Part shown: positions 1 through 32,149 of the stretch, in pieces
How positions within the stretch are numbered: position 1 is the stretch's first letter
How the letters are laid out: each line of letters opens with the position of its first letter
Assembly (NCBI GenBank): GCA_965644315.1
Contig: CBFFRQ010000184.1
Location: forward strand, 1 to 41,986
Reading direction: 5' to 3'
From: Caecitellus pseudoparvulus
Taxonomy: Eukaryota; Protista; Bigyra: Bicosoecida
DNA length: 41,986 bases
Translations under genes and position numbers: made by a program
Notes under the pieces: generated by a model
The model's input: the letters and a program-made list of their open reading frames with translations, nothing else
The model's database searches: none
Told to the model about the DNA's origin: nothing

Positions 1-1068
1 TAACCCTAACCCTAACCCTAACCCTAACCCTAACCCTAACCCTAACCCTAACCCTAACCCTAACCCTAACCCTAACCCTAACCCTAACCCTAACCCTAAC
101 CCTAACCCTAACCCTAACCCTAACCCTAACCCTAACCCTAACCCTAACCCTAACCCTAACCCTAACCCTAACCCTAACCCTAACCCTAACCCTAACCCTA
201 ACCCTAACCCTAACCCTAACCCTAACCCTAACCCTAACCCTAACCCTAACCCTAACCCTAACCCTAACCCTAACCCTAACCCTAACCCTAACCCTAACCC
301 TAACCCTAACCCTAACCCTAACCCTAACCCTAACCCTAACCCTAACCCTAACCCTAACCCTAACCCTAACCCTAACCCTAACCCTAACCCTAACCCTAAC
401 CCTAACCCTAACCCTAACCCTAACCCTAACCCTAACCCTAACCCTAACCCTAACCCTAACCCTAACCCTAACCCTAACCCTAACCCTAACCCTAACCCTA
501 ACCCTAACCCTAACCCTAACCCTAACCCTAACCCTAACCCTAACCCTAACCCTAACCCTAACCCTAACCCTAACCCTAACCCTAACCCTAACCCTAACCC
601 TAACCCTAACCCTAACCCTAACCCTAACCCTAACCCTAACCCTAACCCTAACCCTAACCCTAACCCTAACCCTAACCCTAACCCTAACCCTAACCCTAAC
701 CCTAACCCTAACCCTAACCCTAACCCTAACCCTAACCCTAACCCTAACCCTAACCCTAACCCTAACCCTAACCCTAACCCTAACCCTAACCCTAACCCTA
801 ACCCTAACCCTAACCCTAACCCTAACCCTAACCCTAACCCTAACCCTAACCCTAACCCTAACCCTAACCCTAACCCTAACCCTAACCCTAACCCTAACCC
901 TAACCCTAACCCTAACCCTAACCCTAACCCTAACCCTAACCCTAACCCTAACCCTAACCCTAACCCTAACCCTAACCCTAACCCTAACCCTAACCCTAAC
1001 CCTAACCCTAACCCTAACCCTAACCCTAACCCTAACCCTAACCCTAACCCTAACCCTAACCCTAACCC
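1..1068. repeat. Terminal telomere, (TAACCC)n / (TTAGGG)n, ~178 units; left chromosome end
   Basis: Perfect TAACCC tandem array from base 1, with the C-rich strand on +, as expected for a left arm end. Confidence 0.98.
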
Positions 1069-1274
1069 CACCGGGGCGGGCGCTGAAGCGCCAAGACAGA
1101 CGGCGACTTATACAACGGACACGAGTCTGTGCTAGTCGCAAAGCCGTGCAAGCGGTGCCGTCGTGGTGTCTGTGTCACTGCATTCTGTTGTGGCGCAGGT
1201 GGCACCACATGTCCAAGCCCAAGCTGTACCATGATGTAGCCTGCATGGAGGCAATCTGCAATGCATTGAGTAGC
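1067..1274 (+). mobile_element. 5'-truncated 3'-terminal fragment of family A telomeric retroelement
   Basis: Identical to 3995-4202 (offset 2928). Joined to the telomere through shared CC(C) bases; followed by only TAAC before copy A1. Confidence 0.93.
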
Positions 1275-1501
1275 TAACTTTCCAAATGTCAAGCTAATCA
1301 CAAGTTGTGAAGTGCTAACATTGCCTAATCCAGGCGCTCGTGCACCCAAGTGTGGTGTTGCACAGTGCTTGCTGGTTGGGTGGTGCGCACCGGGGCGGGG
1401 TAGTGCGAATTCCGCACACCATCGCACCGTGGCTCCCAGTTTGCGCCCTCGGTCGGGGCATGCACCTGGGATCGACATCAAAAGCATCATTGACAAGCAT
1501 C

Positions 1502-3586
1502 ATGAACGCCCAAGTGGATCAAGTCCTGGGGGTCCTCTTCGTGGAGGGGTGCCTGAAGCGCAAGCAAGTGCTCGGCCCCAGAACAGGTGTCTTCACTGAC
1601 ATGCCACGTCGGGGTGCCGCACGCACCTTCGAGCTTGGAGGACCCCTGCCCAAGACTGATCATGATAGTTCATCTTCGGCACGGGACATGTGGCTCGAGG
1701 TCTATGGGGAAGCCGCCGAACGGCTGATCCCAGGGCTGAGTGCGGAATTCGGCAACGCCAATGCGGCCCTGCGCCAGGGACCCACCGGATCGCCAACCAT
1801 CCTCGTCACGCTCGGAAGTGAGGGTGATTCACCAACAGTGGCACGTCAACTTCGCATTCTTGCTGCTCAAGAGGACGACTTCGCCATTCGAGTCGGCCAA
1901 GGTGGGTTCGTCGCCGTGGCCTACACCAACACCAAGCAGTTCGCATCGGCGAAGGCGAAAGTGAAGGTGAAGGCCCACCCCACCGCCATCCAAGTGGCCC
2001 ACCAAGTGACCAAGGAAGCAACCGAAATCGCCTGCCAGTCAGGTGATGTTGCCAAGGTCATGTGCCTCGTTAGGTCCCACTTCGACCATGGCCCCGTGCC
2101 AGCCCAAGCCGTCCGTCCCAGTGTCAGACAATCCGTCCCCTCCGAGGGTGATGCACCTGTCGACACCAAGACACCATCGACCTGGACTGACACTCAGCTC
2201 GACAAGGCACCGAAGAAGAAGAAGACCCGTCGAGGCAAGCGAGGAAAGGGCAAGTCAGCCGGACGATCCCTCACCTTCGAGGACGTCTTCATCAAGAACG
2301 TCCGGCCACCTGCACCTCGACCAACCTCACCACCTGCCACCCAAGGCTCACCCAAAGATACCGTCACCACCCCTGTGGTGCATGCCATGTTGCCTTCATC
2401 AAGGGTGCAGCGGGGCGTCGACCGCAAGTGGCCGTCCCCCACCCCGTCGGGCGAGGCAAGCCCCGAGGTGCACCGGTATCGGCCGTCTGCAGCAGCAGCA
2501 TGGGAGGTGATCACAAGGGTGGTGCCTCTTCATGACAGTGTGCGGACACCCGAGCACCTGGCCGAGTACCCCATCAAGCCTGGCCCTCTGGCCGACCTGC
2601 TGTCATCGACCCACGTGTACTCTAACGTGGGGGGGCGGGCCTGTGTCCAGGCCTGTCTCGAGACGGCAGCAGGGGAGAGGGTCTTCGAGGCTGGGGACCT
2701 CCTCCTACTCCAGCATGCAGCCACCATCAACGCTGCCCAGCTTGCCTTCAAGCACATGGTCAGGCAGCTGGAGGGGGTGGTCAGTGACTCGTCCAGCTCG
2801 GACATCATGGACGTCGGCCAGAAGCCACCCTCCCCCTTCCGCTCAGACGGGCAACGGGTGGCCGTCTTCCGCAACATGCTGCACCAGCACTCGCCGGATG
2901 ACACCTTCCTGGCCCCAGGTACACCACCAGTCCTGCTTCCCGGCCTGCACCTGCTCATCGACCGCATCAACCAAGGGTACCGTGCCCCAGCCGGGCATGA
3001 TGACCTTGGCCAGGCCGGCGTCGACCCCAGCCAGGTTGATGAAGAGGGTGACCAAGAGGGGCACCTCGACGGAGTGCTGTATGCCTTCGCACTTCGAGAG
3101 GTGTGGACCGACAACACGGCCCATCTGCAGCTCATCCTCGTCGACCATGATCGAGGCAAGCTGGTGCTGTGGAACCCCGACATCCCTGACCTCCATGACG
3201 AGCTGCCCCTGCACAAGTGCATGACCCGGCTGGCAGCCGAAGGCATCAACGTCTTGTACCGGATCTGGACCACACCCGAGGCGGGCAGTCCAGCACCCTT
3301 CCGGGACAGGCTTCGAGGGGCACTCCAGTCTCTCCGAGATGACTTCCCCCCCCTGCCTCACAAGGCCACCGACGGCACCGTGCACCCCCAGACCCTCATC
3401 GCTGGCAAGGGCACAAGGGTGGCCATGCCTCATGGGCGGATGACCCGACAGCAGGCCGCCACCCTGGAGGCTGAGGTCAAGGACCCCCTCAAGCGGCTGG
3501 TGCCTGAAGACGGCGAGGGTCGCCTGCCCAAGGTCAAGGATGTGCCCCACATCTCGATCGGGCAGATGGGTGGACGCCTGATGTAA
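1502..3586 (+). CDS. Family A ORF (~694 aa; alternative ATG at 1460): ORF1-like protein with basic NLS-like patch and putative Josephin/papain-like cysteine protease domain
   Basis: Open 2.1 kb frame. Colinear homology with B polyprotein N-terminus (TKQFASAKAKV/TKQFASARAKV, SVPSEGDAPV, HVYSN..CVQACLETAAGE, AHLQL.L.DHD.G.L..WNPD). Basic patch KKKKTRRGKRGKGK. Confidence 0.85.
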   Translation: MNAQVDQVLGVLFVEGCLKRKQVLGPRTGVFTDMPRRGAARTFELGGPLPKTDHDSSSSARDMWLEVYGEAAERLIPGLSAEFGNANAALRQGPTGSPTILVTLGSEGDSPTVARQLRILAAQEDDFAIRVGQGGFVAVAYTNTKQFASAKAKVKVKAHPTAIQVAHQVTKEATEIACQSGDVAKVMCLVRSHFDHGPVPAQAVRPSVRQSVPSEGDAPVDTKTPSTWTDTQLDKAPKKKKTRRGKRGKGKSAGRSLTFEDVFIKNVRPPAPRPTSPPATQGSPKDTVTTPVVHAMLPSSRVQRGVDRKWPSPTPSGEASPEVHRYRPSAAAAWEVITRVVPLHDSVRTPEHLAEYPIKPGPLADLLSSTHVYSNVGGRACVQACLETAAGERVFEAGDLLLLQHAATINAAQLAFKHMVRQLEGVVSDSSSSDIMDVGQKPPSPFRSDGQRVAVFRNMLHQHSPDDTFLAPGTPPVLLPGLHLLIDRINQGYRAPAGHDDLGQAGVDPSQVDEEGDQEGHLDGVLYAFALREVWTDNTAHLQLILVDHDRGKLVLWNPDIPDLHDELPLHKCMTRLAAEGINVLYRIWTTPEAGSPAPFRDRLRGALQSLRDDFPPLPHKATDGTVHPQTLIAGKGTRVAMPHGRMTRQQAATLEAEVKDPLKRLVPEDGEGRLPKVKDVPHISIGQMGGRLM

Positions 3587-3994
3587 GTCACCTGTGGGGG
3601 CATACTCCCTGTGCCACACATGACTGAAGCTTTGTGTCGCGACCGACGCACATAGCTGACATCGGACATTGGAAAGTCCAACCCAACCTCACCATCACCA
3701 ACCCAACATCGATACCAACACATCAGGACTCGGCTCAGTGGAAGGGGAAGGCACTTGCAGCAAGATCTGTGAGGCCGCCCCCAAACCTGAGCCGAAGGGA
3801 CAGCCGGGCTGGGTCGTGTGCTTGCATCTCAGCAACACCCAGTCCGTGTCGAGTCCATATCCTCCAGCCCACACCGCCACCCAAGCCAAGCAAGTCGGGT
3901 CTCCACCCCTGGACATCGGACCGAGACGGACGAGACTGGACTGGACGGACAAGACAAGAGTGGACCGAGACCTGGACCTACACCTCAAGACCAT

Positions 3995-4202
3995 CCCACC
4001 GGGGCGGGCGCTGAAGCGCCAAGACAGACGGCGACTTATACAACGGACACGAGTCTGTGCTAGTCGCAAAGCCGTGCAAGCGGTGCCGTCGTGGTGTCTG
4101 TGTCACTGCATTCTGTTGTGGCGCAGGTGGCACCACATGTCCAAGCCCAAGCTGTACCATGATGTAGCCTGCATGGAGGCAATCTGCAATGCATTGAGTA
4201 GC
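3995..4202 (+). ncRNA. Conserved structured 3'-terminal RNA element, family A version (also 1067-1274 and 7265-7472)
   Basis: Stems GGCGC/GCGCC, GACGGC/GCCGTC, ACGGAC/GTCTGT, GCCGT-GCAA-GCGGT, GTGGTGTC/GGCACCAC and CCATG/CATGG, all with compensatory counterparts in family B. Confidence 0.75.
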
Positions 4203-4546
4203 TAACCCTAACCCTAACCCTAACCCTAACCCTAACCCTAACCCTAACCCTAACCCTAACCCTAACCCTAACCCTAACCCTAACCCTAACCCTAACCCTA
4301 ACCCTAACCCTAACCCTAACCCTAACCCTAACCCTAACCCTAACCCTAACCCTAACCCTAACCCTAACCCTAACCCTAACCCTAACCCTAACCCTAACCC
4401 TAACCCTAACCCTAACCCTAACCCTAACCCTAACCCTAACCCTAACCCTAACCCTAACCCTAACCCTAACCCTAACCCCTAACCCTAACCCTAACCCTAA
4501 CCCTAACCCTAACCCTAACCCTAACCCTAACCCTAACCCTAACCTA
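4203..4546. repeat. Internal telomeric tract (~57 TAACCC units) between A1 and A2, with variant units TAACCCC and TAACC near the proximal side
   Basis: Direct reading of sequence. Confidence 0.97.
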
Positions 4547-7472
4547 AACTTTCCAAATGTCAAGCTAATCACAAGTTGTGAAGTGCTAACATTGCCTAAT
4601 CCAGGCGCTCGTGCACCCAAGTGTGGTGTTGCACAGTGCTTGCTGGTTGGGTGGTGCGCACCGGGGCGGGGTAGTGCGAATTCCGCACACCATCGCACCG
4701 TGGCTCCCAGTTTGCGCCCTCGGTCGGGGCATGCACCTGGGATCGACATCAAAAGCATCATTGACAAGCATCATGAACGCCCAAGTGGATCAAGTCCTGG
4801 GGGTCCTCTTCGTGGAGGGGTGCCTGAAGCGCAAGCAAGTGCTCGGCCCCAGAACAGGTGTCTTCACTGACATGCCACGTCGGGGTGCCGCACGCACCTT
4901 CGAGCTTGGAGGACCCCTGCCCAAGACTGATCATGATAGTTCATCTTCGGCACGGGACATGTGGCTCGAGGTCTATGGGGAAGCCGCCGAACGGCTGATC
5001 CCAGGGCTGAGTGCGGAATTCGGCAACGCCAATGCGGCCCTGCGCCAGGGACCCACCGGATCGCCAACCATCCTCGTCACGCTCGGAAGTGAGGGTGATT
5101 CACCAACAGTGGCACGTCAACTTCGCATTCTTGCTGCTCAAGAGGACGACTTCGCCATTCGAGTCGGCCAAGGTGGGTTCGTCGCCGTGGCCTACACCAA
5201 CACCAAGCAGTTCGCATCGGCGAAGGCGAAAGTGAAGGTGAAGGCCCACCCCACCGCCATCCAAGTGGCCCACCAAGTGACCAAGGAAGCAACCGAAATC
5301 GCCTGCCAGTCAGGTGATGTTGCCAAGGTCATGTGCCTCGTTAGGTCCCACTTCGACCATGGCCCCGTGCCAGCCCAAGCCGTCCGTCCCAGTGTCAGAC
5401 AATCCGTCCCCTCCGAGGGTGATGCACCTGTCGACACCAAGACACCATCGACCTGGACTGACACTCAGCTCGACAAGGCACCGAAGAAGAAGAAGACCCG
5501 TCGAGGCAAGCGAGGAAAGGGCAAGTCAGCCGGACGATCCCTCACCTTCGAGGACGTCTTCATCAAGAACGTCCGGCCACCTGCACCTCGACCAACCTCA
5601 CCACCTGCCACCCAAGGCTCACCCAAAGATACCGTCACCACCCCTGTGGTGCATGCCATGTTGCCTTCATCAAGGGTGCAGCGGGGCGTCGACCGCAAGT
5701 GGCCGTCCCCCACCCCGTCGGGCGAGGCAAGCCCCGAGGTGCACCGGTATCGGCCGTCTGCAGCAGCAGCATGGGAGGTGATCACAAGGGTGGTGCCTCT
5801 TCATGACAGTGTGCGGACACCCGAGCACCTGGCCGAGTACCCCATCAAGCCTGGCCCTCTGGCCGACCTGCTGTCATCGACCCACGTGTACTCTAACGTG
5901 GGGGGCGGGCCTGTGTCCAGGCCTGTCTCGAGACGGCAGCAGGGGAGAGGGTCTTCGAGGCTGGGGACCTCCTCCTACTCCAGCATGCAGCCACCATCAA
6001 CGCTGCCCAGCTTGCCTTCAAGCACATGGTCAGGCAGCTGGAGGGGGTGGTCAGTGACTCGTCCAGCTCGGACATCATGGACGTCGGCCAGAAGCCACCC
6101 TCCCCCTTCCGCTCAGACGGGCAACGGGTGGCCGTCTTCCGCAACATGCTGCACCAGCACTCGCCGGATGACACCTTCCTGGCCCCAGGTACACCACCAG
6201 TCCTGCTTCCCGGCCTGCACCTGCTCATCGACCGCATCAACCAAGGGTACCGTGCCCCAGCCGGGCATGATGACCTTGGCCAGGCCGGCGTCGACCCCAG
6301 CCAGGTTGATGAAGAGGGTGACCAAGAGGGGCACCTCGACGGAGTGCTGTATGCCTTCGCACTTCGAGAGGTGTGGACCGACAACACGGCCCATCTGCAG
6401 CTCATCCTCGTCGACCATGATCGAGGCAAGCTGGTGCTGTGGAACCCCGACATCCCTGACCTCCATGACGAGCTGCCCCTGCACAAGTGCATGACCCGGC
6501 TGGCAGCCGAAGGCATCAACGTCTTGTACCGGATCTGGACCACACCCGAGGCGGGCAGTCCAGCACCCTTCCGGGACAGGCTTCGAGGGGCACTCCAGTC
6601 TCTCCGAGATGACTTCCCCCCCCTGCCTCACAAGGCCACCGACGGCACCGTGCACCCCCAGACCCTCATCGCTGGCAAGGGCACAAGGGTGGCCATGCCT
6701 CATGGGCGGATGACCCGACAGCAGGCCGCCACCCTGGAGGCTGAGGTCAAGGACCCCCTCAAGCGGCTGGTGCCTGAAGACGGCGAGGGTCGCCTGCCCA
6801 AGGTCAAGGATGTGCCCCACATCTCGATCGGGCAGATGGGTGGACGCCTGATGTAAGTCACCTGTGGGGGCATACTCCCTGTGCCACACATGACTGAAGC
6901 TTTGTGTCGCGACCGACGCACATAGCTGACATCGGACATTGGAAAGTCCAACCCAACCTCACCATCACCAACCCAACATCGATACCAACACATCAGGACT
7001 CGGCTCAGTGGAAGGGGAAGGCACTTGCAGCAAGATCTGTGAGGCCGCCCCCAAACCTGAGCCGAAGGGACAGCCGGGCTGGGTCGTGTGCTTGCATCTC
7101 AGCAACACCCAGTCCGTGTCGAGTCCATATCCTCCAGCCCACACCGCCACCCAAGCCAAGCAAGTCGGGTCTCCACCCCTGGACATCGGACCGAGACGGA
7201 CGAGACTGGACTGGACGGACAAGACAAGAGTGGACCGAGACCTGGACCTACACCTCAAGACCATCCCACCGGGGCGGGCGCTGAAGCGCCAAGACAGACG
7301 GCGACTTATACAACGGACACGAGTCTGTGCTAGTCGCAAAGCCGTGCAAGCGGTGCCGTCGTGGTGTCTGTGTCACTGCATTCTGTTGTGGCGCAGGTGG
7401 CACCACATGTCCAAGCCCAAGCTGTACCATGATGTAGCCTGCATGGAGGCAATCTGCAATGCATTGAGTAGC
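4547..7472 (+). mobile_element. Family A element, full-length copy A2
   Basis: Apparently identical to A1 (offset 3271, then 3270) except G7 to G6 at ~5900-5905. Confidence 0.9.
4773..6856 (+). pseudogene. Family A ORF with -1 frameshift in a G homopolymer (possibly a sequencing error)
   Basis: Split into ORFs 4611-6494 and 6026-6856. A1 has AACGT-G7-CGGGC; A2 has AACGT-G6-CGGGC. Confidence 0.7.
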
Positions 7473-7478
7473 TAACCC
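7473..7478. repeat. Single telomeric unit separating A2 and B1
   Basis: GAGTAGC-TAACCC-TGCCCTG. Confidence 0.8.
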
Positions 7479-10400
7479 TGCCCTGCTTGTGTCCATGAGT
7501 GGCACTGGAGACAGCCCAAGGCTTGCCCAATGTCTGCGCGAGGCTGCTGCTACTGCGGATGACGCCACTTTTCACCTTCAGGGGGGAGGGAGCATCTCTG
7601 TGGCGTTTGTCAAGACCAAGCAGTTTGCTAGCGCGCGGGCCAAGGTTCGGGTTGTTGCACCGACCTCTGTGCTCAAGGCAGCTGAACGTGTGCATGACCA
7701 GGCCACCATGCTTGCACAAGCCACTGGCAACGTTGCATCAGTGGTGAACCTTGTCAAGACTTCCCTGGCTGCACAACGATCTCAGCCAAAGACCATGTAC
7801 AATGTCACCGGACATTCCGTCCCCTCTGAGGGAGACGCCCCTGTCGGTGAAAGTACAGTCAAGGAGGCCCAGCCTCACACCCAAGCACTGAAGGATGGCA
7901 GAAGGCAGAAGAAGGTGCGGCGAGGCCTGCGAAAAGGAAAGAAGGAACCCAAGCACCACCGCACCTTTGCCGACTTGTTCAAGAGCGAATCTGTTCCGTC
8001 TGAGGAAGGCACAGGTTCCCCCAAGCCGAACCTGCCTGCATGTACCACCCCACCTCGCACCAAGGCCGACGTGGCCCTTCCAACGTCTCGAGTCAGCAAG
8101 GGCACGGCCACACGGTGGGACCAGCTCTTCCCAAGCCCAAAGGCACCCCCCGCAACAACTGGACCTGAACCGAAAGCAGCTGCAGCTCCCGCCCAGCCCC
8201 CAACCAAAGTGGTTGAGCTTGCTGCGTGTCCTCGAGTGCCGGCATGCCTACCGAAACGGTCTATCAAGCACCACACAAAGCTGTGTGACCTCCTGTCCTC
8301 TGACCATGTGTACAGCAACACTGAGGACAGAAACTGTGTACAGGCCTGTCTTGAGACTGCCGCCGGTGAACCAATCTTGCAGCGAGATGACCTCGCTCTT
8401 CTTCACCACGCAGCAACCATCGCTGCAGCCCAACATGCGATGGGCAACATCAAGGCCTCTGCAGGCATGGCAGCCTCACGAACGCCTGACTCCGATGTCG
8501 TCCCCGTCACCAGAACTGGGAGTGGGGAGGTGGATGCGGCACCGGATGATCTGACGACCTTCCGCAGTCTCCTGGTGCGCTTTGCACCCGATGACTCCCT
8601 GCTGTCAGCTACATCCCCGCCTGTCCTCCTCCCCGGCTTACACCTACTCATGCAGCACATCAACAACGGTCACAAGGCGCTGAAGGGCGCAGACCTCCTA
8701 CCAAGCAGTCAGCTTGATGTCCGAGCTGTGATGGAGGACGAACGGCAGGAGGACTACTTCGAGGATGTTTACTTTGCCTTTGCTTTGACCATTCCATCCA
8801 AGGCGCATAGTGCCCACCTTCAGCTTCTCCTCATTGATCATGACCATGGTGTGCTTCACATGTGGAACCCAGACTTGCCAAGCTCTACCTCAGAACTTTC
8901 CCTACACAAGTGTCTGCTCCGGCTACATACTGAAGGGGTGACCACTGTGTACAGAGTAGCGGTCACTCCACTGTCAGGCCACACACGGTCCTTCCGCGAT
9001 CGACTGCGTGACGCGTTCAAGACCATCCGAGACGAGTACCCTCCCCTGCCGCTTGTGGTAGATGACAGCACTGCGTATGCGCGTACACTCATCGCAGGAA
9101 AGGCAACCCGGGTTGTCCTTCCAGAAGCACGACGTACACGACACAGTGCCTCCATGCTGGAGAAAGCCACGGCCAATGATCCACTCACGAAGTTCATCCC
9201 ACAGAGTTGGGACTCAATATCTGCTCGATGGGACCAAGGCCCACACACCCCTGTTGGTCGAAAGGGCTTGACCAAGTTGGCCTTCGTCTCCTGGAACGTC
9301 GCACGGTCCTGTGGAACCCACCTTCACCAGCTCATACACTGTGCACGAACCCCCCAAGCTCACACCGCCTTGCTTGCACTTTGTCTGACAGAACCCGGAG
9401 GGCATGGGACTCTTGACACTGAGGTGGTGGGACTCCAGTGCTTTAGACCCAACCCACCTGACAGACCACCAGGGAGAAGTGAGGTGGCCCTTCTTCTGGA
9501 CAAACGCCTTGGAGCCACACAACTACTCGACCTGGGACTTGACGGCCGCTGCATCGTTGCATGTTCAGTCCCAGCCAAGCCCAAACCACTTGCCATCATT
9601 GCTGCATACGTACCAAACTGGTACACGGCACAGCGCAAGAAGCCGCTGGCCGACCCGGACACGAAGCTCCCCCACAGACAGGAAGTCTGGGAACAACTGC
9701 ACGCGGCCGTAGAGTCCCTGCAACACACGCACATGATGGTGGTTATGGGGGATCTGAACTGTCACCCGGGTGACAGTGGTGTACAGTGCTGGGGGCAAGA
9801 GGCATGGGTCAATGAGACCGGCGTATCAGAGCCAAACGAAGATGTTCAAGAACTTGACAGGCTCTGCCAAGTGGCAGGTCTCTCACCCCCTGGCAGGGCA
9901 GGTGTGTCAACTCACGCGACTCACAAGAGAGCACTTGATCACATCCTTTTGTGCCCACTGCTGAAGACAACAATGACGAGTCCCCTGAAAGTCACGACGA
10001 AGTTCTCCAGTGCTGGAAGACAGCGGAAAGCAGACTTGATCTTCAGCGACCATTACTTGCTGTCCTCCACTGTGGTTGTCAAGCTTGTGAAAGAGACCAG
10101 GTCCTCTCACAGCCTGACCCGACCCCACTCTGTCCCGCCATGGTGGCCGGCCTCGACACCGTCAGGCCAAAGAGCGCAAGCGCTTCACCGGAACCTTCTC
10201 GACCAAGCCCAGGCTACCACACCCTTGCCCACAGCCGGCGCCGAAGAAGAGCAGGCATTGTCCCAGCTGGACCGGCTGGTCGCTGCATCGGCTGAGAAGG
10301 CACACGCCACCTGCAAAGGAACATCCCCTGAAGTACTGCAAGTCTTCACCGATGTATCGAAGTACAGCAAGCTGAAGAAGAAGATGACGGCGCGCGCGAA

Positions 10401-13400
10401 GAAGTTGCGGCGTGAGCTATGCCGCATTGACCGACGCCTTGTCTTGGTCCACAACACTGCAAGATCTTCAGATCCTGTCATGTCCTGTCTCCTCAAGGAC
10501 CAGAGAGGTATGATAGCGGAAGATCTTGCACACACTGTGCGGATGAGAAAGGAGTCAATGCGGCGCTGCACTCACCTACTCAAAAAGAAGCACAAGCACT
10601 CCGTCAGTCAGATCAAGCAGCGTATCAAGGAACTGGCACTCACTGATCCCTTCGCTGCCCATGTTCATGTCAGGCGTCTGTCTGGCCGACGAAAGAAGGC
10701 TGGGGTAACTTCCATTCAGTCTGTGTATGGGGGAGACGGAAAGCTGGTGTATGCAAGTGCGGCGGTAAAACAAGCTGTCCGTGAACAGATGGCAGCGATC
10801 ATCAGCCCAGATGTGACAGCTCTAACCCCTCTGCGGTTTGGGCTTGCAAGGCTGCTGCCCTCCATGCATGAAGAGTTTCGCCCCCCAGAAGTCTGGCTCC
10901 CCACGAAGCGAACGGTCATGTCAGCCATCGATGCTCTCAACTTGCACCGCAACCCTGGAACAGGTCAGTTTCAAGCTGAACACCTCAAGTACTCGAGCCC
11001 GGCCTTCAAAGAAAGGTACACCCAAGCCTTGCTAGACACGCTGGCTCACGGGTCCTGTCCTGCAAAGTACCACGAGGGTGTGGGCACTCTCATTCCCAAG
11101 AAGTCTAGCAGACCTGGACGCGTGGACACGTACAGGCTGATCGTCTGTCGGCCTCCACAAGCTAAACTGTACTTCTCCGTCGTCGCGGCCTGTGTGGAAG
11201 CATGGATGAAATCTTGGATCTCGCGAGAGCAAGCAGGGTTCAGCAAGTCACGCAACACACACGAGCAAATCATTGCTCTTCAAGAGGCTGCAAACGGATA
11301 CCTCAGACGCTCACCAGACAAGCACGTCCTCGTCATGTTCATCGACTTTAAGGCAGCGTTCGACTCGGTCAGCCATGCTGCGATCCTTGAGATCCTTGAA
11401 GCTGCCCGGCTGCCTGATCCCCTGCTCAAGGCCGTGTCAGAGTACATGTCACGGGCCAGTGTCTCCATCCACACGGCCCACGGACTGTGCGATCCCCTCC
11501 TTGTCACAAGCGGCGTCCCTCAGGGTGGCGCCCTGTCACCCTTACTCTTCAAAGTCGCCATCGATGTTCTGTCCCAGCGCCTCCAAGAGCTCCCTGGACA
11601 GGGATACGCCGGAGCTGGGGTGCCTACATCTGCAGGCCGCCTCACTCACACTCTGTATGCCGACGATCTTGCTTGCTTGGCCACGTCTCCATCTGCGATG
11701 CAAAGAATGTTTCATGAAGTGCGGGCTGTGGGAGCACGTGTTGGCTTGAAGATCAACCCAAGGAAGTCAGGCATTATGGTGATTACCAACGCAGCACCAG
11801 TCAATGGAGTCTGTGCGAACGAGAGGCGCAAGGCAATTTGGCGATCCAGGTGGCTCAAGTCTGGAAAAACACTCACCGTCGGTGGTGTTCCCATCGAGCG
11901 GACACGCAGCTATGTCTTCCTTGGTGCCCCTCTATGCGAAGATGTCCGCAAGACACGGGCCTCTGCTCTCAAGCAGGCCAGTCTTTCCTGCACGCAAGCA
12001 GGGTTTGCCTGCAGTGCTCTGCTCACTGGCGAGTGGGTGGGCGTTGACCTCAAGCAGCGAATTGGTAGTGCCTCCATCACGGCAGCGGCGGACTACATAC
12101 TGGCTACTCAGGTCCGCAACTCTGTCCTTCCCCTGCGCGAAGTAGACCGGGGCCTCGCTACTGCTCTGAGCAAGACCCAGATCGGCATGCAGAGTTCCCT
12201 GGCAAGGATGCATAACTATGCAAAACTTGCCGTGTGCGGCTTCCTACCTGCACACATACGCGCCACCAAGCTGCGCTCGAACATCTTCCGCAAGCTCATC
12301 TCCGATCTCCATGCCGGGACTCCAGTAGCGAGAGTCATGCTGCAGACCCTGCCGGTCGCCCTCGACATGCTCCCCTCCCCAGTCACGATGGAGTTCCTCG
12401 TCGGCCTGAACGGAGACCTGGATCGCGCACGGTCGGGCATCCCGCCCCCCTTCGCCCTTCATGGCCTGCTTGACTTGTGGCTGCACGGCTGCCTGCCAAG
12501 CCGCAGTGCCCTTGAGCAGTTGGTTCAGGGAGACGGGGATGCGGACACCTCATCCGACGACAGCGTGGCGGATACGCTAGATCTGGATCCCACACCACCC
12601 AAGATCAAGTACCTTGGGCTGGCTGCGTCCTCCTCCTCCAGCCTGATGATGCCCCCGGACTTCCCTGCCAAGATGTCGTGGCGCGCCCGACAGCACGTTG
12701 TGTGCTCCTTCTTGCACATCGCCCAGTCGTCCAAGTGCCCCGCTCTCGGGTACTCCCCCTCTGGTGATCTGCACCGTGTGCGTCGCCCGCGGCCGTACCA
12801 TGTGGGTGTGGGGGCTCGATTCTTCTGCTGGCTCCACCCCATCCCGTCAGCCCCAAGCCCATTGCTGTGGGTGTGCGAGGACAACCGTCCACAGGTTGTG
12901 AAGGTCCATCTCTGGCAAACCCTTCAGCTTTTCCATGGCGAAGACACCCCGACACTCTTTGAGGAGTGTCCACTCTGCGGGAGTGTCTCCTGGGCCACGC
13001 TGCACGAGCACGTCTTGCTCTCGTGCCGCCACCCAGCCTTAGACGAGGCCAGACAGGATGCCTTGGCAGCCATGCTGGCCACCGCGGCCCAGTCCAACAG
13101 CGTGGCCCAAGGTGGGCACCCCTCCGCTCTTTTGACCATCCCTGCTCCCCTGACTCGCGCCCTCCAGTCGGCGAAGTCCCGGAGTGCCCTCCCTCGATCG
13201 TCCTCCAAGCTCCTCCTCCGCCTGCTCTTGTGTGGCCAATGGCCCTTCCGCATCGATGAGGATCCTGCGCAGCAACTGTGGAGTCCTGAAGGGGCGGCTG
13301 TCATGAGCCACCCCCACCTCCGCCTTCGCTCCACTCGTGGTCCAGTCAAGCCCCCAGCCTTCTGGAAGAAGCTGCTCCAGGCTGGGGCTGGCTTTGCTTC

Positions 13401-13752
13401 ATCTGCGTGGGACATTGTGCTGCAGCGCATGCTTAGACTTACCTCGCCAGAGCACGTGCATGTCCAGCGGCACGCAAGGTACCTCTGGTGGGCAGCTCAT
13501 GGCCGTGCCTGTCCTTTTCCTGGCCACACGAAGCCGGTGTCCAGTGCTGTGAACAGGCAGACTCGAGATGTGCGCACGCGGAGGACACAGCGTACGTACT
13601 TCCCTGACCGCTCACAGCGCGGGCCACCCCGGTCCTTCTCCCAGCAGTCCACCTTGTTTGATCACGGCTTGGTCCAAGAAAGACAGTCCATACCCATGAG
13701 AGATGGTCCTGAGAGTGGAGGGGGGGCAGCAGAGGGGGCGGGCGAGCAGTAG
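7477..13752 (+). CDS. Single-ORF polyprotein: putative cysteine protease + apurinic-like endonuclease + reverse transcriptase + CCHC zinc knuckle (first ATG 7495; N-terminus truncated)
   Basis: APE motifs FVSWNVA, LCLTE, AAYVPN, MGDLN, LDHIL, FSDH (~9285-10055). RT motifs EQAGF, FIDFKAAFDSVSH, GVPQGGALSPLLF, LYADDL (11656), GLKINPRKS, YVFLG. Zinc knuckle CPLCG-x8-EHVLLSC (12967-13026). Confidence 0.95.
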   Translation, partial: PALLVSMSGTGDSPRLAQCLREAAATADDATFHLQGGGSISVAFVKTKQFASARAKVRVVAPTSVLKAAERVHDQATMLAQATGNVASVVNLVKTSLAAQRSQPKTMYNVTGHSVPSEGDAPVGESTVKEAQPHTQALKDGRRQKKVRRGLRKGKKEPKHHRTFADLFKSESVPSEEGTGSPKPNLPACTTPPRTKADVALPTSRVSKGTATRWDQLFPSPKAPPATTGPEPKAAAAPAQPPTKVVELAACPRVPACLPKRSIKHHTKLCDLLSSDHVYSNTEDRNCVQACLETAAGEPILQRDDLALLHHAATIAAAQHAMGNIKASAGMAASRTPDSDVVPVTRTGSGEVDAAPDDLTTFRSLLVRFAPDDSLLSATSPPVLLPGLHLLMQHINNGHKALKGADLLPSSQLDVRAVMEDERQEDYFEDVYFAFALTIPSKAHSAHLQLLLIDHDHGVLHMWNPDLPSSTSELSLHKCLLRLHTEGVTTVYRVAVTPLSGHTRSFRDRLRDAFKTIRDEYPPLPLVVDDSTAYARTLIAGKATRVVLPEARRTRHSASMLEKATANDPLTKFIPQSWDSISARWDQGPHTPVGRKGLTKLAFVSWNVARSCGTHLHQLIHCARTPQAHTALLALCLTEPGGHGTLDTEVVGLQCFRPNPPDRPPGRSEVALLLDKRLGATQLLDLGLDGRCIVACSVPAKPKPLAIIAAYVPNWYTAQRKKPLADPDTKLPHRQEVWEQLHAAVESLQHTHMMVVMGDLNCHPGDSGVQCWGQEAWVNETGVSEPNEDVQELDRLCQVAGLSPPGRAGVSTHATHKRALDHILLCPLLKTTMTSPLKVTTKFSSAGRQRKADLIFSDHYLLSSTVVVKLVKETRSSHSLTRPHSVPPWWPASTPSGQRAQALHRNLLDQAQATTPLPTAGAEEEQALSQLDRLVAASAEKAHATCKGTSPEVLQVFTDVSKYSKLKKKMTARAKKLRRELCRIDRRLVLVHNTARSSDPVMSCLLKDQRGMIAEDLAHTVRMRKESMRRCTHLLKKKHKHSVSQIKQRIKELALTDPFAAHVHVRRLSGRRKKAGVTSIQSVYGGDGKLVYASAAVKQAVREQMAAIISPDVTALTPLRFGLARLLPSMHEEFRPPEVWLPTKRTVMSAIDALNLHRNPGTGQFQAEHLKYSSPAFKERYTQALLDTLAHGSCPAKYHEGVGTLIPKKSSRPGRVDTYRLIVCRPPQAKLYFSVVAACVEAWMKSWISREQAGFSKSRNTHEQIIALQEAANGYLRRSPDKHVLVMFIDFKAAFDSVSHAAILEILEAARLPDPLLKAVSEYMSRASVSIHTAHGLCDPLLVTSGVPQGGALSPLLFKVAIDVLSQRLQELPGQGYAGAGVPTSAGRLTHTLYADDLACLATSPSAMQRMFHEVRAVGARVGLKINPRKSGIMVITNAAPVNGVCANERRKAIWRSRWLKSGKTLTVGGVPIERTRSYVFLGAPLCEDVRKTRASALKQASLSCTQAGFACSALLTGEWVGVDLKQRIGSASITAAADYILATQVRNSVLPLREVDRGLATALSKTQIGMQSSLARMHNYAKLAVCGFLPAHIRATKLRSNIFRKLISDLHAGTPVARVMLQTLPVALDMLPSPVTMEFLVGLNGDLDRARSGIPPPFALHGLLDLWLHGCLPSRSALEQLVQGDGDADTSSDDSVADTLDLDPTPPKIKYLGLAASSSSSLMMPPDFPAKMSWRARQHVVCSFLHIAQSSKCPALGYSPSGDLHRVRRPRPYHVGVGARFFCWLHPIPSAPSPLLWVCEDNRPQVVKVHLWQTLQLFHGEDTPTLFEECPLCGSVSWATLHEHVLLSCRHPALDEARQDALAAMLATAAQSNSVAQGGHPSALLTIPAPLTRALQSAKSRSALPRSSSKLLLRLLLCGQWPFRIDEDPAQQLWSPEGAAVMSHPHLRLRSTRGPVKPPAFWKKLLQAGAGFASSAWDIVLQRMLRLTSPEHVHVQRHARYLWWAAHGRACPFPGHTKPVSSAVNRQTRDVRTRRTQRTYFPDRSQRGPPRSFSQQSTLFDHGLVQERQSIPMRDGPESGGGAAEGAGEQ

Positions 13753-14349
13753 CAGGCTTACGTATGGCGTGGTGACAACCACGGTCACCATCCTGCGAAG
13801 CAGCGCCTCTGCTGAAGCTCCCCCCGATGATTGACGAATAGCTCTGCGAAAGGAGGAGGAATTGCTGAATGAGCGGTCCATGGGCACTTACCTGACGATG
13901 ATGGAGCCTCCTGAAGTCCTCGAAGAAGCCCTGCGGCAACGCGGGTGGAACAAGCCGTGCTTGACGTACGGACGTTCCACGCGCGGCGCCGCAGGCATGG
14001 ACTCACCGGCTCCGGACTCAGCATCCAAGTGCAAGAGAAGTTGGACCTTGATATGAAGAAAGTATCCTGTGGAAGGGAAGGGGTGCTGCGGCGCGCGCTC
14101 GTGCGCCAGGCGGTCCCTCCGCCGCCGTGGCGTTTCGAGCGAAACGCCACGACCGCACCTCGCCCTCCCAACAGCCTGCAGTTGCCCCACAAGGGTCTCT
14201 CGCGGCAGCAGGCACGTTTAAGGCAACAAGCATGAAGAATGGTGCAGAGAAGTGAATTGGATTATGATGTGAAGTGCTGATTGGTGAGCGCGCCACCTTG
14301 ATGGACTCTCTGTGGTGTGGTTCAAGCTGGCCAAGGACGGGACTTTCTC

Positions 14350-14555
14350 CCCACGGGGCGGGCGTAGGACACGCCCTAGCAAGCGGCGACCTCTACAACG
14401 GTCGCAAGACTGTGTTGGTTGCAGATCCACGCAAGTGGAAGCCGCTGCGGCGCTTCTGCAGTGCATTCGTGCACGGCAGCGAGCGCCGCATGTGACGCCC
14501 AAGCCGAACCGCGCAAGTTGCAAGCGTGGAGGTGAAGTGCAATGCATTGAACAGC
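14350..14555 (+). ncRNA. Conserved structured 3'-terminal RNA element, family B version (also ~16768-16972)
   Basis: GGGCGT/ACGCCC, AGCGGC/GCCGCT, ACGGTC-GCAA-GACTGT, TCCAC-GCAA-GTGGA, GCGGCGCT/AGCGCCGC, GTGCA-TTCG-TGCAC, CCGCGC/GCGTGG. Confidence 0.75.
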
Positions 14556-14573
14556 TAACCCTAACCCTAACCC
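14556..14573. repeat. (TAACCC)3 spacer between B1 and B2
   Basis: Direct reading. Confidence 0.93.
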
Positions 14574-16171
14574 TTGCCATTGCACTGAGCAAGACGCAGA
14601 TCGGCATGCAAAGTTCCCTGGCAAGGATGCACAACTATGCAAAACTCGCCGTATGTGGCTTCCTTCCTGCACACATACGCGCAACCAAGCTGCGCTCGAA
14701 CATCTTCCGCAAGCTCATCTCCGATCTTCACGCCGGGACACCAGTAGCGAGGGTCATGCTGCAGACCCTGCCGGTCGCACTCGACATGCTCCCCTCCCCA
14801 GTCACCATGGAGTTCCTTGTCAACTTGAACGGAGACCTGGACCGCGCTCGATCAGGAATCCCCCCTCCCTTCGCTCTTCACGGCCTGCTGGACTTGTGGT
14901 TGCACGGCTGCCTGCCCAGCCGCAGTGCCCTTGATGGGCTCATCCAAGGGGGTGGAAGCTCAGGTGCTGCTTCCCAAGACAGCGAGACTGACACACAGGA
15001 CCTGGACCCCACGCCTCCCAAGATCAAGTACCTTGGTCTGGCTGCCTCCTCCTCCTCAAGCATGCTGTCGCCTCCTGCCTTCCCTGCCAAGATGTCGTGG
15101 CGTGCGCGGCAGCACGTTGTGTGCTCCTTCTTGCACATCGCCCAGTCATCTGAATGCCCTGCCCTCGGATACTCCCCCACCGGTGACTTACACCGCGTGC
15201 GCCGTCCACGTCCGTACCATGTAGGCGTGGGGGCCCGGTTCTTCTGCTGGCTCCACCCCATCCCGTCAGCCCCAAGTCCACTACTGTGGGTCTGCGATAA
15301 TGACCGGCCACAAGTTGTGAAAGTCCATCTTTGGCAAACTCTTCAGTTCATCCACGGCGAAGACACCCCGACGCTCTTTGAAGCGTGCCCACTCTGCGGG
15401 AGTGTCTCGTGGGCCACTCTGCACGAGCACGTCCTGCTCTGGTGCAGCCACCCAGCTCTGGACCAAGCCAGGCAAGACGCCTTTACCACCATGCTGTCCA
15501 TCGCAACCCAGTCCAACAGTTACGTACATGGCGACCGCCCCCCTGCTCATCTGTCCATCCCTGCCCCCCTGACCCGTGTCCTTCAGTTGGCGAAGGCTCG
15601 GTCTGCCTCCCCTCGGTCGTCCTCCAAACTCCTCCTCCGCTTGCTCCTGTGTGGCCAGTGGCCCTCCCGCATTGACGAGGACCCGGAGCAGCAGCTGTGG
15701 GGTCCCGAAGGGGCGGCGGTCATGAGCCACCCCCATCTCCTCCTTCGTTCCGCTCGTGGTCCAGTCAAGCCCCCTGTCCTCTGGAAGAAGTTGCTTCAGG
15801 CAGGCGCTGCCTTCGCTTCATCTGCGTGGGACATCATGCTGCAGCGCATGCTTCGACTTACCTCGCCAGAGCATGTGCACATCCAGCGGCACGCAAGGTA
15901 CCTCTGGTGGGCAGCTCACGGCCGTGCCTGTCCCTTTCCTGGCCATACAGTTCCTGTGTCAAGTGCTGTGAACAGGCAGACTCAGGATGTACGCACGCGA
16001 AGGACGCAGCGCACTTACTTCCCTGATCGCTCACAGCGCGGGCCACCCCGATCCTTCTCCCAGCAGTCCACCTTGTTTGACCACGGCTTGGTCCGAGGGA
16101 GACAGTCAGTCTCCATGGGAGAAGGCTCTGAGGGCGAAGAAGAGGCACTGGAGGGCGCGGGCGAGCAATAG
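14573..16171 (+). pseudogene. C-terminal fragment of family B polyprotein (frame still open; CCHC knuckle retained)
   Basis: ALSKTQIGMQSSLARMHNYAK...GAGEQ* matches the B1 C-terminus. Many differences are synonymous. Confidence 0.85.
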
Positions 16172-16972
16172 CAGGCTTACATGTGGCGTGGTGACAACCA
16201 CGGTCACTCTTCTGCGAAGCAGTGCGCCTGCTGAAGCCCCCCCGATGATCGTCGAATAGCTCTGCCAAAGGAGGAGGAATTGCTGAAGCATGGGTTCGCG
16301 GGCACTTACCTGACGATGATGGAGCCTCTTGATGTCCTTGAAGCAGCCCTGCGGTAACGCGGGTGGAACAAGCCGTGCTTGACGTACGGACGGACCACGC
16401 GCGGGGCGGCAGGCTCGGACTCACCGGCTCCGGACTCAGCATCCAAGTGCGACAGATGATGAACCTATATATGAGGGAAGTAACCTGCGAAGGGGATGTG
16501 GTGCTGCGGCGCGCGCTTGTGCGCCAGGCGGTCCCTCCGCCGCCGCGGCGTTTCGACCGAAACGCCACAGCAGCACCCCTCCCTCACAACGGCCTGCAGT
16601 TGCCCCGCAAGGGTTCACCGCGGCAGCAGGCACGTTGAAGCGAGCAAGCATGAGGTACAGCACAGAGAAATGATTTGGATTATGATGTGAAGTGCTGATT
16701 GATGAGCGCGCCACCCGGATGGACTCTCTATGGTGTGGTTCAAGCTGGCCAAGGACTGGACCTTCTCCCCACGGGGCGGGCGTAGAACACGCCCTAGCAA
16801 GCGGTGACCTCTACAACGGTCGCAAGACTGTGTTGGTTGCAGATCCACGCAAGTGGAAGCCGCTGCGGCGCTTCTGCGGTGCATTCGTGCACGGCAGCGA
16901 GCGCCGCATGTGACGCCCAAGCCGAACCGCGCAAGTTGCAAGCGTGGAGGTGAAGTGCAATGCATTGAGATC
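14573..16972 (+). mobile_element. Family B, diverged 5'-truncated copy B2 (post-RT region and 3' UTR only)
   Basis: Colinear with B1 from ~12154 to 14555. Ends GCATTGAGATC|TAACC. Confidence 0.92.
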
Positions 16973-17007
16973 TAACCTAACCTAACCCTAACCCTAACCC
17001 TACCCCC
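16973..17007. repeat. Proximal degenerate telomeric tract TAACC TAACC (TAACCC)3 TACCCCC; boundary of the retroelement array
   Basis: Direct reading. Confidence 0.9.
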
Positions 17008-17200
17008 AGACTATAAACTTATTCTCGACGCACCGCACCTTCACTGCAGCGGCGAACTCACCCGGCAGCAGAGGCATCAGAAAACCTGCACAGCCTTCAC
17101 ACCTCACGTCAAACAGTGCCTCCAAGACATCAATGCGCTTTTCTTGGCAAGCTTTTTCCCACCTTGCCGCAGCTTCAGTAGAATCTCCTGCCCCAGCCAT
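17000..17200 (-). pseudogene. Possible 5' stub of a host gene running into the telomeric tract
   Basis: MAGAGDSTEAAARWEKACQEKRIDVLEALF..., with the stop supplied by the telomeric tract. Faint resemblance to EEWKAACKGRKTETL in the ankyrin gene N-terminus. Confidence 0.25.
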
Positions 17201-31476: not shown

Positions 31477-32149
31477 AATCTGCACAGGGATGCAGCAAGC
31501 GTCAGTTTTCCAGTTTATTGGCCGGATTCCCCCGAGGCAGCGCACAAAAGAAACCCGCAAGCGCCTACGACAAGCACTTGAGATACAAGCACGTGGGGAA
31601 TCTAAACAACTCCGATGGCCGATGCCAGACACAGCAACGATAAGCACCCATAACATACAAACTGGCTGATGCTTTCGTTCGGCTGCGCGCAGCAATCCGC
31701 AGGAAAGGGAGCTTGAAGTCTGCTGCACAGGGTGCTCTTCAACTTCAACTACACACCGGACGATGTGGAGGACACCGACGCACCTCACAGAGCTAGCAAG
31801 CTTCGATGAGGTGGGTGGAGGGAGTGCAATGCTTCATGATCAAATGGTCTGAAGCATGTTGGTTTTTGAGTGGAAGGGAAGACTGCCCGCAGAGTTGGCC
31901 ATCCTGAGGTGGTCAACACAGCTGCGGCAGCTTCACTCGAAGGGAAGATCCATGGGCAGCACGGACCGTGAGCGATTTGTTCATGGTTTGAGGTCTGCGG
32001 TGGTAGTGCCTGGCAGTGTACATAGCTTGCTGCAGCGTCAAGGTCAGACCGTCAGCACGCTGCGACTTCGAGGTACCCACACAAGCCCTGGCCACTGCCT
32101 GGTTCGTCGGGAAGCCACAGCACCAGTGCGGCAGAGGCGTCCGGAGTTC

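Follow-up and report, generated by a model that had tools for sequence, protein, structure and literature searches.

The chromosome end contained in contig CBFFRQ010000184.1 of Caecitellus pseudoparvulus (positions 1–41,986, the window) carries an array of APE-type non-LTR retrotransposons (LINEs) set between telomere repeats. We consider it probable that the array consists of stacked elements specific for the telomere repeat together with one non-autonomous partner, A. The terminal telomere tract occupies positions 1–1066 and contains 178 perfect CCCTAA units, (CCCTAA)178; its G-strand is on the minus strand and this is therefore a left chromosome end. Five element pieces follow, all on the + strand and with their 5′ ends facing the chromosome tip. 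The first comprises the last 207 nt of a 5′-truncated A (1067–1273, +), whose junction with the telomere is formed by a CCC microhomology. Only CTAAC (1274–1278, +; ~ 4–5 nt) separates this tail from A copy 1 (1279–4201, +), which is full length, starting with TTTCCAAATG and ending with GCAATGCATTGAGTAG. An internal telomere tract of 57 units (4202–4549) has an irregular CCTAAAC at its end, adjoining the 5′ end of A copy 2 (4550–7471, +). About one telomere unit, CTAACCC (7472–7478), separates copy 2 from B (~ 7479–14554, +), a 7.1-kb copy of a LINE with APE and RT that is 5′-truncated with respect to a 7.6-kb full-length form, and ~ 3 units (14555–14573) separate B from B′ (14574–16971, +), an older 5′-truncated B-type copy of 2.4 kb with 86% identity to the last 2.4 kb of B. 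Approximately five degenerate telomere-like units (16972–17005) mark the border with unique subtelomeric DNA; the telomeric tracts and unit-length spacers are given no strand. These borders were determined by self-BLAST and reading of the junctions, which confirm the arrangement described in the initial annotation of five co-oriented pieces with spacers of 0.7, ~ 57, 1 and 3 units under a 1-kb telomere.

The order of the pieces in the window might be an artefact that arose when near-identical subtelomeric repeats were assembled, given that dozens of other A copies have the same sequence as these, that the order is the one in the assembled contig and that the assembly contains homopolymer errors. 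The A-to-B junction of this array was sought in contigs and not confirmed. Even so, an artefact is very hard to credit: A-CTAAC-A, A-telomere-A and element-between-repeats junctions are found on dozens of contigs, on a metagenome scaffold and in unrelated runs, and the finding would hold whatever the exact order of the pieces here.

The genome-wide matches support the conclusion that, in this assembly, the elements sit only in telomere-repeat context, in one orientation and with one junction phase. The matches comprise 59 of A and 71 of B-type; those on the + strand all fall within the first ~ 22 kb of their contig and the others are on the − strand, within the last ~ 12 kb in every − strand contig measured. 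In at least 16 contigs, 0.8–2.2 kb separate the start of the contig from the first A, and (TTAGGG)n lies distal of the elements in seven of the nine − strand contig ends fetched. Copies of A that are near-identical number at least 56, at distal contig ends, always 5′-distal and with nested 5′ truncations. The telomere-only context and single polarity proposed earlier thus hold for the A and B-type matches, though only tentatively for one fragment (C79:360695-362059). On a metagenome scaffold, a full-length B is flanked by CCCTAA repeats on both sides.

The junctions themselves are equally regular. At the 3′ side, CTAACC directly follows a family-specific 3–7 nt in 27 of 28 cases, and the flanks of full-length copies are compatible with a 5-bp CTAAC duplication. 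The 5′ truncations of A are nested, at 29, 30, 107, 174, 212, 507, 1748, 1905 and 2687 nt, always with the 3′ end kept. The A-CTAAC-A junction recurs at several other chromosome ends and in contigs of other runs. Could the arrays and the copy number of A have been made mainly by recombination, break-induced replication or gene conversion between subtelomeres, with A a passenger and little ongoing retrotransposition? The ~ 100% identity of the at least 56 A copies and the presence of the same A-to-A junction on several contigs would fit, as would the uniformity of A within this genome when the A sequences of other strains and metagenomes are 2–3% different, which looks like concerted evolution. 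We nevertheless judge this explanation quite improbable. The nine truncation points of A are distinct, its neighbours and tract lengths vary between chromosome ends and the telomere phase is the same at every 3′ joint; varied 5′ truncation, varied neighbours and a constant 3′ phase are marks of target-primed reverse transcription rather than of segmental copying.

The open frame of B (7489–13752, +) extends over 2087 aa without an ATG and contains the N-terminal region, a protease-like domain, the APE, the RT and a C-terminal region of ~ 640 aa. The AP-type endonuclease domain (9289–10053, +), in which the motifs WNV, TE, GDLN and SDH are all found, lies N-terminal to the reverse transcriptase domain (RVT_1; 11092–11823, +). 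Profile matches were obtained to RVT_1 (3e-31) and to Exo_endo_phos (9e-8, profile positions 2–225), and a PDB sequence search with the endonuclease alone gave nothing useful. The best relatives of the RT among solved structures are those of R2 and L1 ORF2p, while the database proteins nearest to the RT core are unnamed metagenomic proteins of at most 33% identity. The C-terminal region carries a conserved CPLC...H...C (CCHC-type) motif (12967–13026, +), and in a poor model (mean pLDDT 51) its 648 aa are mostly helical with no RNase H-like sheet. LTRs are absent, and the copies of A and B are 3′-anchored with variable 5′ truncation. The LINE-type RT together with the APE rules out a Penelope-like element, and the AP-type endonuclease rules out one of MoTeR/CRE type.

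B had been taken to be the autonomous element of the array. In the copy in the window, however, 527 nt are missing at the 5′ end, made up of a 317-nt leader and 72 codons, the ATG among them, and this copy is thus not autonomous. At full length, autonomous elements measure ~ 7.6 kb and have a single ORF of ~ 2160 aa; the genome contains at least seven autonomous families, of which B is one. Among B copies dN/dS is 0.13–0.15 overall, 0.14–0.24 in the protease-like domain and 0.04–0.12 in the APE, the most constrained of the B domains.

A (2.9 kb) contains neither APE nor RT. Its open reading frame (1601–3586, +; ATG at 1601, 661 aa and stop) ends where the endonuclease would start, and the protein aligns over its full length and colinearly with aa 1–665 of full-length B at 42% identity, bearing out the earlier description of A as a homologue of the N-terminal part of B alone. 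The same 42% rules out A being a recent deletion derivative of B. More than 30 copies at other places in the genome match copy 1 with 100% identity. The sole difference between the A copies in the window is G7 versus G6 at 2629/5900, which breaks the frame of copy 2; short-read-type contigs have only G7 at this site, and the G6 at 5900 is probably a homopolymer error of the assembly. Matches to A are either 96–100% identical, with frames of at most 755 aa, or at most 48% identical, and none of the A matches in the genome is an A-type copy carrying its own RT. The full-length A-type copies with RT that the initial annotation had named as evidence against a two-component system are thus absent. 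We infer that A depends on an RT supplied in trans.

Whether the A protein contributes to this is a separate question. A may be a young deletion derivative in which the ORF is intact by inheritance and the protein has no role in the spread of A. Ends acting in cis suffice for a non-autonomous element, and because all the copies are identical, selection on A is not measurable within the genome. We regard this reading as doubtful, since the protein of the nearest autonomous family is at most 48% identical to that of A and yet the frame of 661 codons is open, with its CVQAC, AHL and WNPD motifs kept. The RT-less structure is, moreover, common to strains that are ~ 3% diverged, and the apparently frameshifted A copies are probably assembly errors. 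The retention of the ORF and its motifs suggests that the A protein may be under selection.

A and full-length B have both termini in common. The first ~ 95 nt of A and of full-length B are ~ 93% identical, compared with just 42% for the proteins. In the 3′ domain of A (3968–4202, +) the invariant TGCAATGCATTGA comes after a multi-helix RNA structure, and the structured domain of B lies at 14321–14555 (+). The structure common to the two spans ~ 190 nt and is supported by covariation: it has 63 pairs, 95% of cells are paired and 17 pairs show compensatory changes, as against 7.8 ± 1.7 in shuffled controls (0 of 500 reach the observed value) and at most 9 in slid controls. The structured 3′ end that A and B had been said to share is therefore well supported. 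It matches no known RNA family in Rfam (search of positions 1–17100). The 3′ end of A is 66–68% identical to that of B and 72% identical to that of another autonomous family. The further proposal that B specifically mobilises A is not supported: the B copy is truncated, there are at least seven autonomous families and the 3′ end of another family is closer to that of A.

The region that A shares with the autonomous elements is an orphan in sequence. Pfam gave no match to the A protein, even at E values up to 10, and gag features (zinc knuckles, major homology region) are not seen. In an exhaustive HMMER search against 1.84 billion representatives, the only hits were a 48-aa piece of this protein itself and a repeat protein, the latter spurious. 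A feature search of the protein atlas gave weak cysteine-protease leads (0.82) for the conserved C-terminal domain (2477–3583, +) and nothing for the N-terminal 175 aa. The best fold matches of this domain, of modest score, are to papain-like cysteine proteases, to which almost all the top matches belong (Josephin, Z 7.0; C39 peptidases, Z 6.8; staphopain, Z 6.6); Z is at most 7.0, the Foldseek E-value is 0.025 or worse and the mean pLDDT of the model is 66. In the model, the first Cys of CVQAC is residue 56, at the start of helix 56–65, His216 lies on strand 214–223, and Asn233/Asp235 (WNPD) follow strand 228–232. The Cys, His and Asn/Asp positions are conserved in all sequences that cover them, in A, in the B family and in three other element copies. 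The domain thus appears to resemble, to a modest degree, a papain-like cysteine protease (clan CA) rather than gag.

How the elements might reach their positions can be outlined as follows. The RT complex of at least one autonomous family would, acting in cis or in trans, recognise the conserved 3′ RNA structure with its invariant UGCAAUGCAUUGA tail. The G-strand would be nicked by the endonuclease at a fixed phase (GGGTTAG^GG), or its 3′ end used directly; judging by the constancy of the CTAACC 3′ junction and by a duplication compatible with CTAAC, the endonuclease may be specific for the telomere repeat. Reverse transcription would begin at the 3′ end of the RNA, which would account for the constant ...CTAACC 3′ junction, and the 5′ ends would be joined through microhomology, often following truncation. 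The A RNA would end in ...GCAATGCATTGA(N4-5), with or without CUAAC read-through. A would spread on borrowed machinery to become the dominant element at chromosome ends, and the arrays would continually be capped by telomerase. The near-100% identity of A, which could partly reflect recombination between chromosome ends, goes against this explanation.

The direct use of the 3′ end is the basis of a different account, in which elements are attached, in the manner of Drosophila HeT-A and TART, to the natural G-strand 3′ end once a telomere has become critically short, telomerase rebuilds a tract on the 5′ end of the element and the arrays are a back-up for end maintenance. The polarity is exclusively 5′-distal, which speaks for this account, but a strand-specific nick would explain a fixed polarity too. 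The window shows an age gradient, with the diverged B′ proximal and identical A copies distal, and 5′ junctions consist of a short irregular T-run and then regular G-strand repeats, both of which are in favour of end addition. So is the length of the internal tracts, mostly just 1–5 units compared with a perfect terminal tract of ~ 1 kb; tracts this short are also not predicted by random endonuclease insertion into a long tract, which counts against the explanation that we prefer. On the other side, a staggered cut that duplicates 5 bp is in keeping with the flanks of full-length copies, and the endonuclease has its catalytic motifs intact and, as noted above, is the domain under the strongest constraint. 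TART and TAHRE likewise retain an endonuclease domain, so its conservation is compatible with end addition. Taken as a whole, we consider end addition possible but not probable, and favour insertion into telomere repeats by target-primed reverse transcription.

Among known systems, the closest in functional class are TRAS1 and SART1 (R1-clade) of Bombyx mori. These too are APE-type LINEs confined to telomeric repeats, with a fixed orientation and nick phase, in a host that retains telomerase-type repeats, and the elements described here are co-linear with the C-strand, as is TRAS. Their 3′ UTR is recognised in trans by proteins of the element (PMC7265360). The elements described here differ in having no poly(A) tail, one long ORF in place of ORF1 and ORF2, an orphan N-terminal region with a protease-like domain in place of a gag-like ORF1, a TTAGGG rather than TTAGG target and an abundant RT-less coding partner.

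That partner recalls Drosophila, where HeT-A, TART and TAHRE form head-to-tail arrays with the 5′ end distal. As with A, the commonest element, HeT-A, has no RT, encodes a homologue of the N-terminal portion of an autonomous relative and must obtain its RT in trans (for A, as inferred above). The differences are that the host here has a TERT and long perfect telomerase repeats, with which the elements are interleaved, that the A protein has no gag features and that attachment by end addition is, for these elements, only the alternative considered above. Of the HeT-A/TAHRE-like partnership originally suggested, the RT-less coding partner with N-terminal homology stands; the gag-like domain is missing and the host keeps telomerase, and the analogy is functional only.

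In Magnaporthe/Pyricularia, MoTeR1 and MoTeR2 are inserted in the TTAGGG telomeres of a telomerase-positive microbe, and an autonomous and a short element have common 5′ and 3′ ends and a different middle. CRE-type elements have a restriction-like endonuclease, in contrast to the AP-type endonuclease found here. MoTeR1 is listed in the CRE clade (PMC10088271). The host, moreover, belongs to another kingdom, and the ORF of A is a homologue of the autonomous N-terminus. Partners with LINE termini that are mobilised via recognition of the 3′ end are known in ingi/RIME and L1Tc/NARTc of trypanosomes and in LINE/SINE pairs such as UnaL2/UnaSINE1, but these are non-coding and dispersed, whereas A is coding and telomere-restricted. 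Athena and Coprina, also telomere-associated retroelements, occur in telomerase-bearing hosts, and short telomere repeats lie between their copies; they have a Penelope-type RT without endonuclease, unlike the LINE-type RT and APE here.

Telomere-specific retrotransposons are known from few lineages only. The lineages given in a survey from 2023 are insects, Giardia, Chlorella, the rice-blast fungus, rotifers and one lizard, with no stramenopile among them (PMC10088271), and our literature search for such elements in stramenopiles or labyrinthulomycetes found no earlier description. The fly-like arrangement with an RT-less partner is thus not yet described for this protist group. The combination, in a marine protist, of diversified telomeric LINEs and a dominant RT-less coding partner with canonical telomerase alongside offers an independent, microbial and possibly culturable system in which to ask how retroelements come to target chromosome ends, how non-autonomous partners take over and whether such elements can aid in maintaining chromosome ends before the loss of telomerase. 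The N-terminal orphan region, which may include a cysteine protease, is an accessory module of which we found no description for telomeric LINEs.

The presence of a host TERT had been left open by the initial annotation. We have found an intact gene, with an open frame of 1389 aa that contains the telomerase RBD and RT domains. That the elements are an intermediate between telomerase-based and retrotransposon-based end maintenance is speculation. One could go further and suppose that they are more than telomere parasites and form a second, regulated route of end extension at telomeres eroded to a few repeats, each being added at the tip and then re-capped by telomerase. The orphan protease-like protein of A would then be a telomere-targeting or assembly factor needed by the autonomous families, corresponding by convergence to HeT-A Gag in a cell that has telomerase; this we regard as decidedly unlikely. 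The 1 kb of perfect terminal repeats and the intact TERT fit a normally functioning telomerase.

The layout of the array was determined by self-comparison of the window and by direct reading of its junctions. The left chromosome end coincides with the start of the window, where 178 perfect CCCTAA units form the terminal telomere tract (1–1066). Moving inwards, there follow a 207-nt 3' fragment of A, the RT-less protein-coding element of ~2.9 kb (1067–1273), a CTAAC (1274–1278), A copy 1 (1279–4201), an internal telomere tract of 57 units (4202–4549), A copy 2 (4550–7471), CTAACCC (7472–7478) and B, a LINE of autonomous type (~7479–14554). Three telomere units (14555–14573) separate B from B', a diverged 3' tail that matches the final 2.4 kb of B at 86% identity (14574–16971), and about five degenerate units (16972–17005) lead into unique DNA. 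Every element piece lies on the + strand, with its 5' end facing the chromosome tip. The arrangement described in the initial annotation, five pieces separated by 0.7, ~57, 1 and 3 units beneath a 1-kb telomeric cap, proved accurate.

The ORF of A starts at the ATG at 1601 and encodes 661 residues, which align end to end with residues 1–665 of full-length B at 42% identity; its stop falls at the point where the endonuclease would start. No traces of APE or RT coding were found in the 620 nt 3' of the stop, in agreement with the earlier proposal that A is a homologue of the B N-terminus only. Genome-wide, matches to the A domain fall into two classes, either 96–100% identical with frames of up to 755 aa, or at most 48% identical and within autonomous elements. 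None is a full-length A with its own RT, the form that the initial annotation had named as incompatible with its A/B partnership. A copies 1 and 2 differ solely in a run of guanines, G7 versus G6 (2629 and 5900, respectively), and G6 is present in ~24 A copies of the assembly. Contigs from sequencing run X1, which contain Illumina adaptor remnants and share an organism label with the best holders, have only G7, in one unbroken contig. G7 is also found in two unrelated data sets (X5 and X7), and G6 predominates only in the noisy run X3. We attribute G6 to a homopolymer error of long-read sequencing; on this view, virtually every copy probably has an intact A ORF. The split suggests systematic homopolymer errors in the assembly, and other genes may be affected too. 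Selection on the A protein is suggested by a frame that is open though no relative is closer than 48%, and by the motifs CVQAC, AHL and WNPD of its C-terminal, protease-like domain, which are kept in every covering sequence of the alignment. Upstream of the conserved structure, the A 3' untranslated region has 2.2 tandem copies of a 19-nt repeat, GACGGACAAGACAAGACTG (3925–3965 and 7195–7235).

The 2087-aa frame of B contains an AP-type endonuclease (residues 601–855), in which the motifs WNV, TE, GDLN and SDH are all found, and a reverse transcriptase (residues 1202–1445) similar to the solved RTs of R2 and L1 ORF2p. The 640 residues C-terminal to the RT are kept across families and include a CPLC...H...C motif; no RNase H-like sheet was seen in the model of this region, which is itself poorly folded. 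On metagenome scaffold L041, CCCTAA repeats flank both sides of a 7.6-kb element whose 2159-aa protein is 98% identical to that of B. Compared with this element the B of the window lacks 527 nt, made up of the entire 317-nt leader plus 72 codons, the ATG among them, and is by its sequence a dead, 5'-truncated copy. In the genome itself, B is present at full length on contig C114. Grouped by identity class, the autonomous elements form seven or more families, whose open frames span 1900–2390 aa. Among B copies dN/dS is 0.13–0.15 overall, 0.04–0.12 in the endonuclease, 0.05–0.10 in the RT and 0.14–0.24 in the protease-like domain. Distant AP-endonucleases, 32–37% identical to that of B, occur on the − strand at C42:709675–710583, C13:976966–977874 and C147:56573–57481 of the genome assembly (G000), and the open frames that enclose them measure 1017, 2779 and 3394 aa. 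All but one of these sites adjoin telomeric arrays on the inner side, and the frames may represent another LINE-like family. At another chromosome end (L025:1711–3129, from G000:C207), a far more divergent relative, 26% identical to the C-terminal region of B, adjoins A and B tails, which makes the group both more ancient and wider than the set of families compared.

A and full-length B have a common 5' terminus, TTTCCAAATGTCAA.CTAATCACA.GTTGTG, and their first 95 nt are ~93% identical, far above the coding region. The last ~210 nt are also common to both. When 3' ends from A, from several variants of B and from three further families were aligned, the consensus fold had 63 pairs in 11 helices, with 95% of cells paired compared with 26–46% for slid partners. 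Compensatory changes are seen at 17 pairs, whereas shuffles give 7.8 ± 1.7 (none of 500 attains 17) and slid controls never exceed 9, which backs the structured 3' end noted earlier. Downstream of the structure come an invariant TGCAATGCATTGA, 3–7 nt that are specific to each family, and CTAACC, with no poly(A) at the 3' end of the aligned elements.

Full-length copies of A number at least 46 in the genome, alongside several truncated ones, all ~100% identical, and the A C-terminal domain has at least 56 copies. All + strand A copies lie within 15 kb of the contig start, and the first A starts 0.8–2.2 kb from it in at least 16 contigs. In the − strand contigs that could be measured, all element copies lie in the last ~12 kb, and (TTAGGG)n is distal to seven of nine − strand contig ends retrieved. 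The telomeric location and single polarity that had been predicted hold in the assembly contigs, and B-type and related autonomous elements are placed as A is. A 505-aa N-terminal/endonuclease fragment (G000:C79:360695–362059, − strand) is the one copy whose distance from a contig end could not be measured. Truncated A copies of 29, 30, 107, 174, 212, 507, 1748, 1905 and 2687 nt each keep the 3' end, a signature of target-primed reverse transcription. CTAACC is found at 27 of 28 3' junctions, and the A-end-plus-telomere junction occurs in 33 exact copies (0 for the reversed control pattern). Contigs of a marine metagenome and of a run under another organism label contain A-end/telomere units/A-start and A-end/CTAAC/A-start arrangements, as well as the 5' sequence of full-length B. 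Word depth in X1 is 25–40 times higher for A than for B; depth does not equal copy number, but it fits with A outnumbering every other element by a wide margin.

These data are consistent with a TRAS/SART-like cycle. The conserved 3' structure would be recognised, a G-strand 3' end (...GGGTTAG) would prime on the RNA end, and microhomology would join the 5' end. Examples of such microhomology are CCC at 1066/1067 and 7476–7478, with variable A-runs at full-length 5' junctions. The flanks of full-length copies are compatible with a 5-bp CTAAC duplication, as would arise if the G-strand were nicked after GGGTTAG and the C-strand after CCCTAAC. The primer may come from a nick made by the endonuclease or be the chromosome's own end; the sequence fits both. 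The internal telomere tracts are very short, mostly 1–5 units, the terminal tract is a pure 1 kb, and the elements run from old (proximal) to young (distal), none of which would be expected if elements inserted at random within a long tract. Tract lengths and age order suggest either insertion into the innermost repeats or element addition to eroded ends followed by re-capping by telomerase. The latter is kept as a less likely alternative. The host TERT, whose presence had been left to be checked, is encoded at one locus: a 1389-aa frame is open there and contains an RT domain as well as a Telomerase_RBD, which scores 79 bits and so passes the cut-off.

By sequence searches the N-terminal protein of A is an orphan, and its first 175 residues were not explained by a feature search. 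An AlphaFold model of residues 293–661 (mean pLDDT 66, core 70–90) places the first Cys of CVQAC at model residue 56, the start of helix 56–65, the conserved His at residue 216 on a strand, and the Asn/Asp beyond the next strand. In an exhaustive structural search the matches were almost all papain-like cysteine proteases, namely Josephin (Z 7.0), C39 peptidases (6.8) and staphopain (6.6), and also streptopain and calpain, with weak agreement from Foldseek. These scores are modest, and we take a papain-like cysteine protease fold as a reasoned lead from the predicted structure. Neither sequence nor structural searches found gag-like features in this protein.

The HeT-A/TAHRE-like partnership originally proposed is retained as a functional likeness: as in HeT-A with TART/TAHRE, the dominant partner is coding and RT-less. 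Unlike HeT-A, however, the system here has no gag, and telomerase is present. TRAS/SART elements are alike in function, in that they target telomeres and their 3' UTR is recognised in trans (PMC7265360). MoTeR1/2 likewise have shared ends and a TTAGGG host, but use a restriction-like endonuclease rather than the AP-type found here. Stramenopiles are absent from a 2023 survey of telomere-inserted retrotransposons (PMC10088271), and literature searches found no earlier account of such a system in stramenopiles or labyrinthulomycetes.

Directly inside the telomeric array, the − strand of the window carries an uninterrupted 4674-aa ORF (17764–31788) with weak AAA/Rad17 P-loop matches only. It is accompanied on the same strand by a 487-aa ankyrin-repeat protein (32150–33613) and by a reading frame longer than 2629 aa (34092–41981), which runs past the window end and has one thrombospondin type 1 (TSP1) domain.
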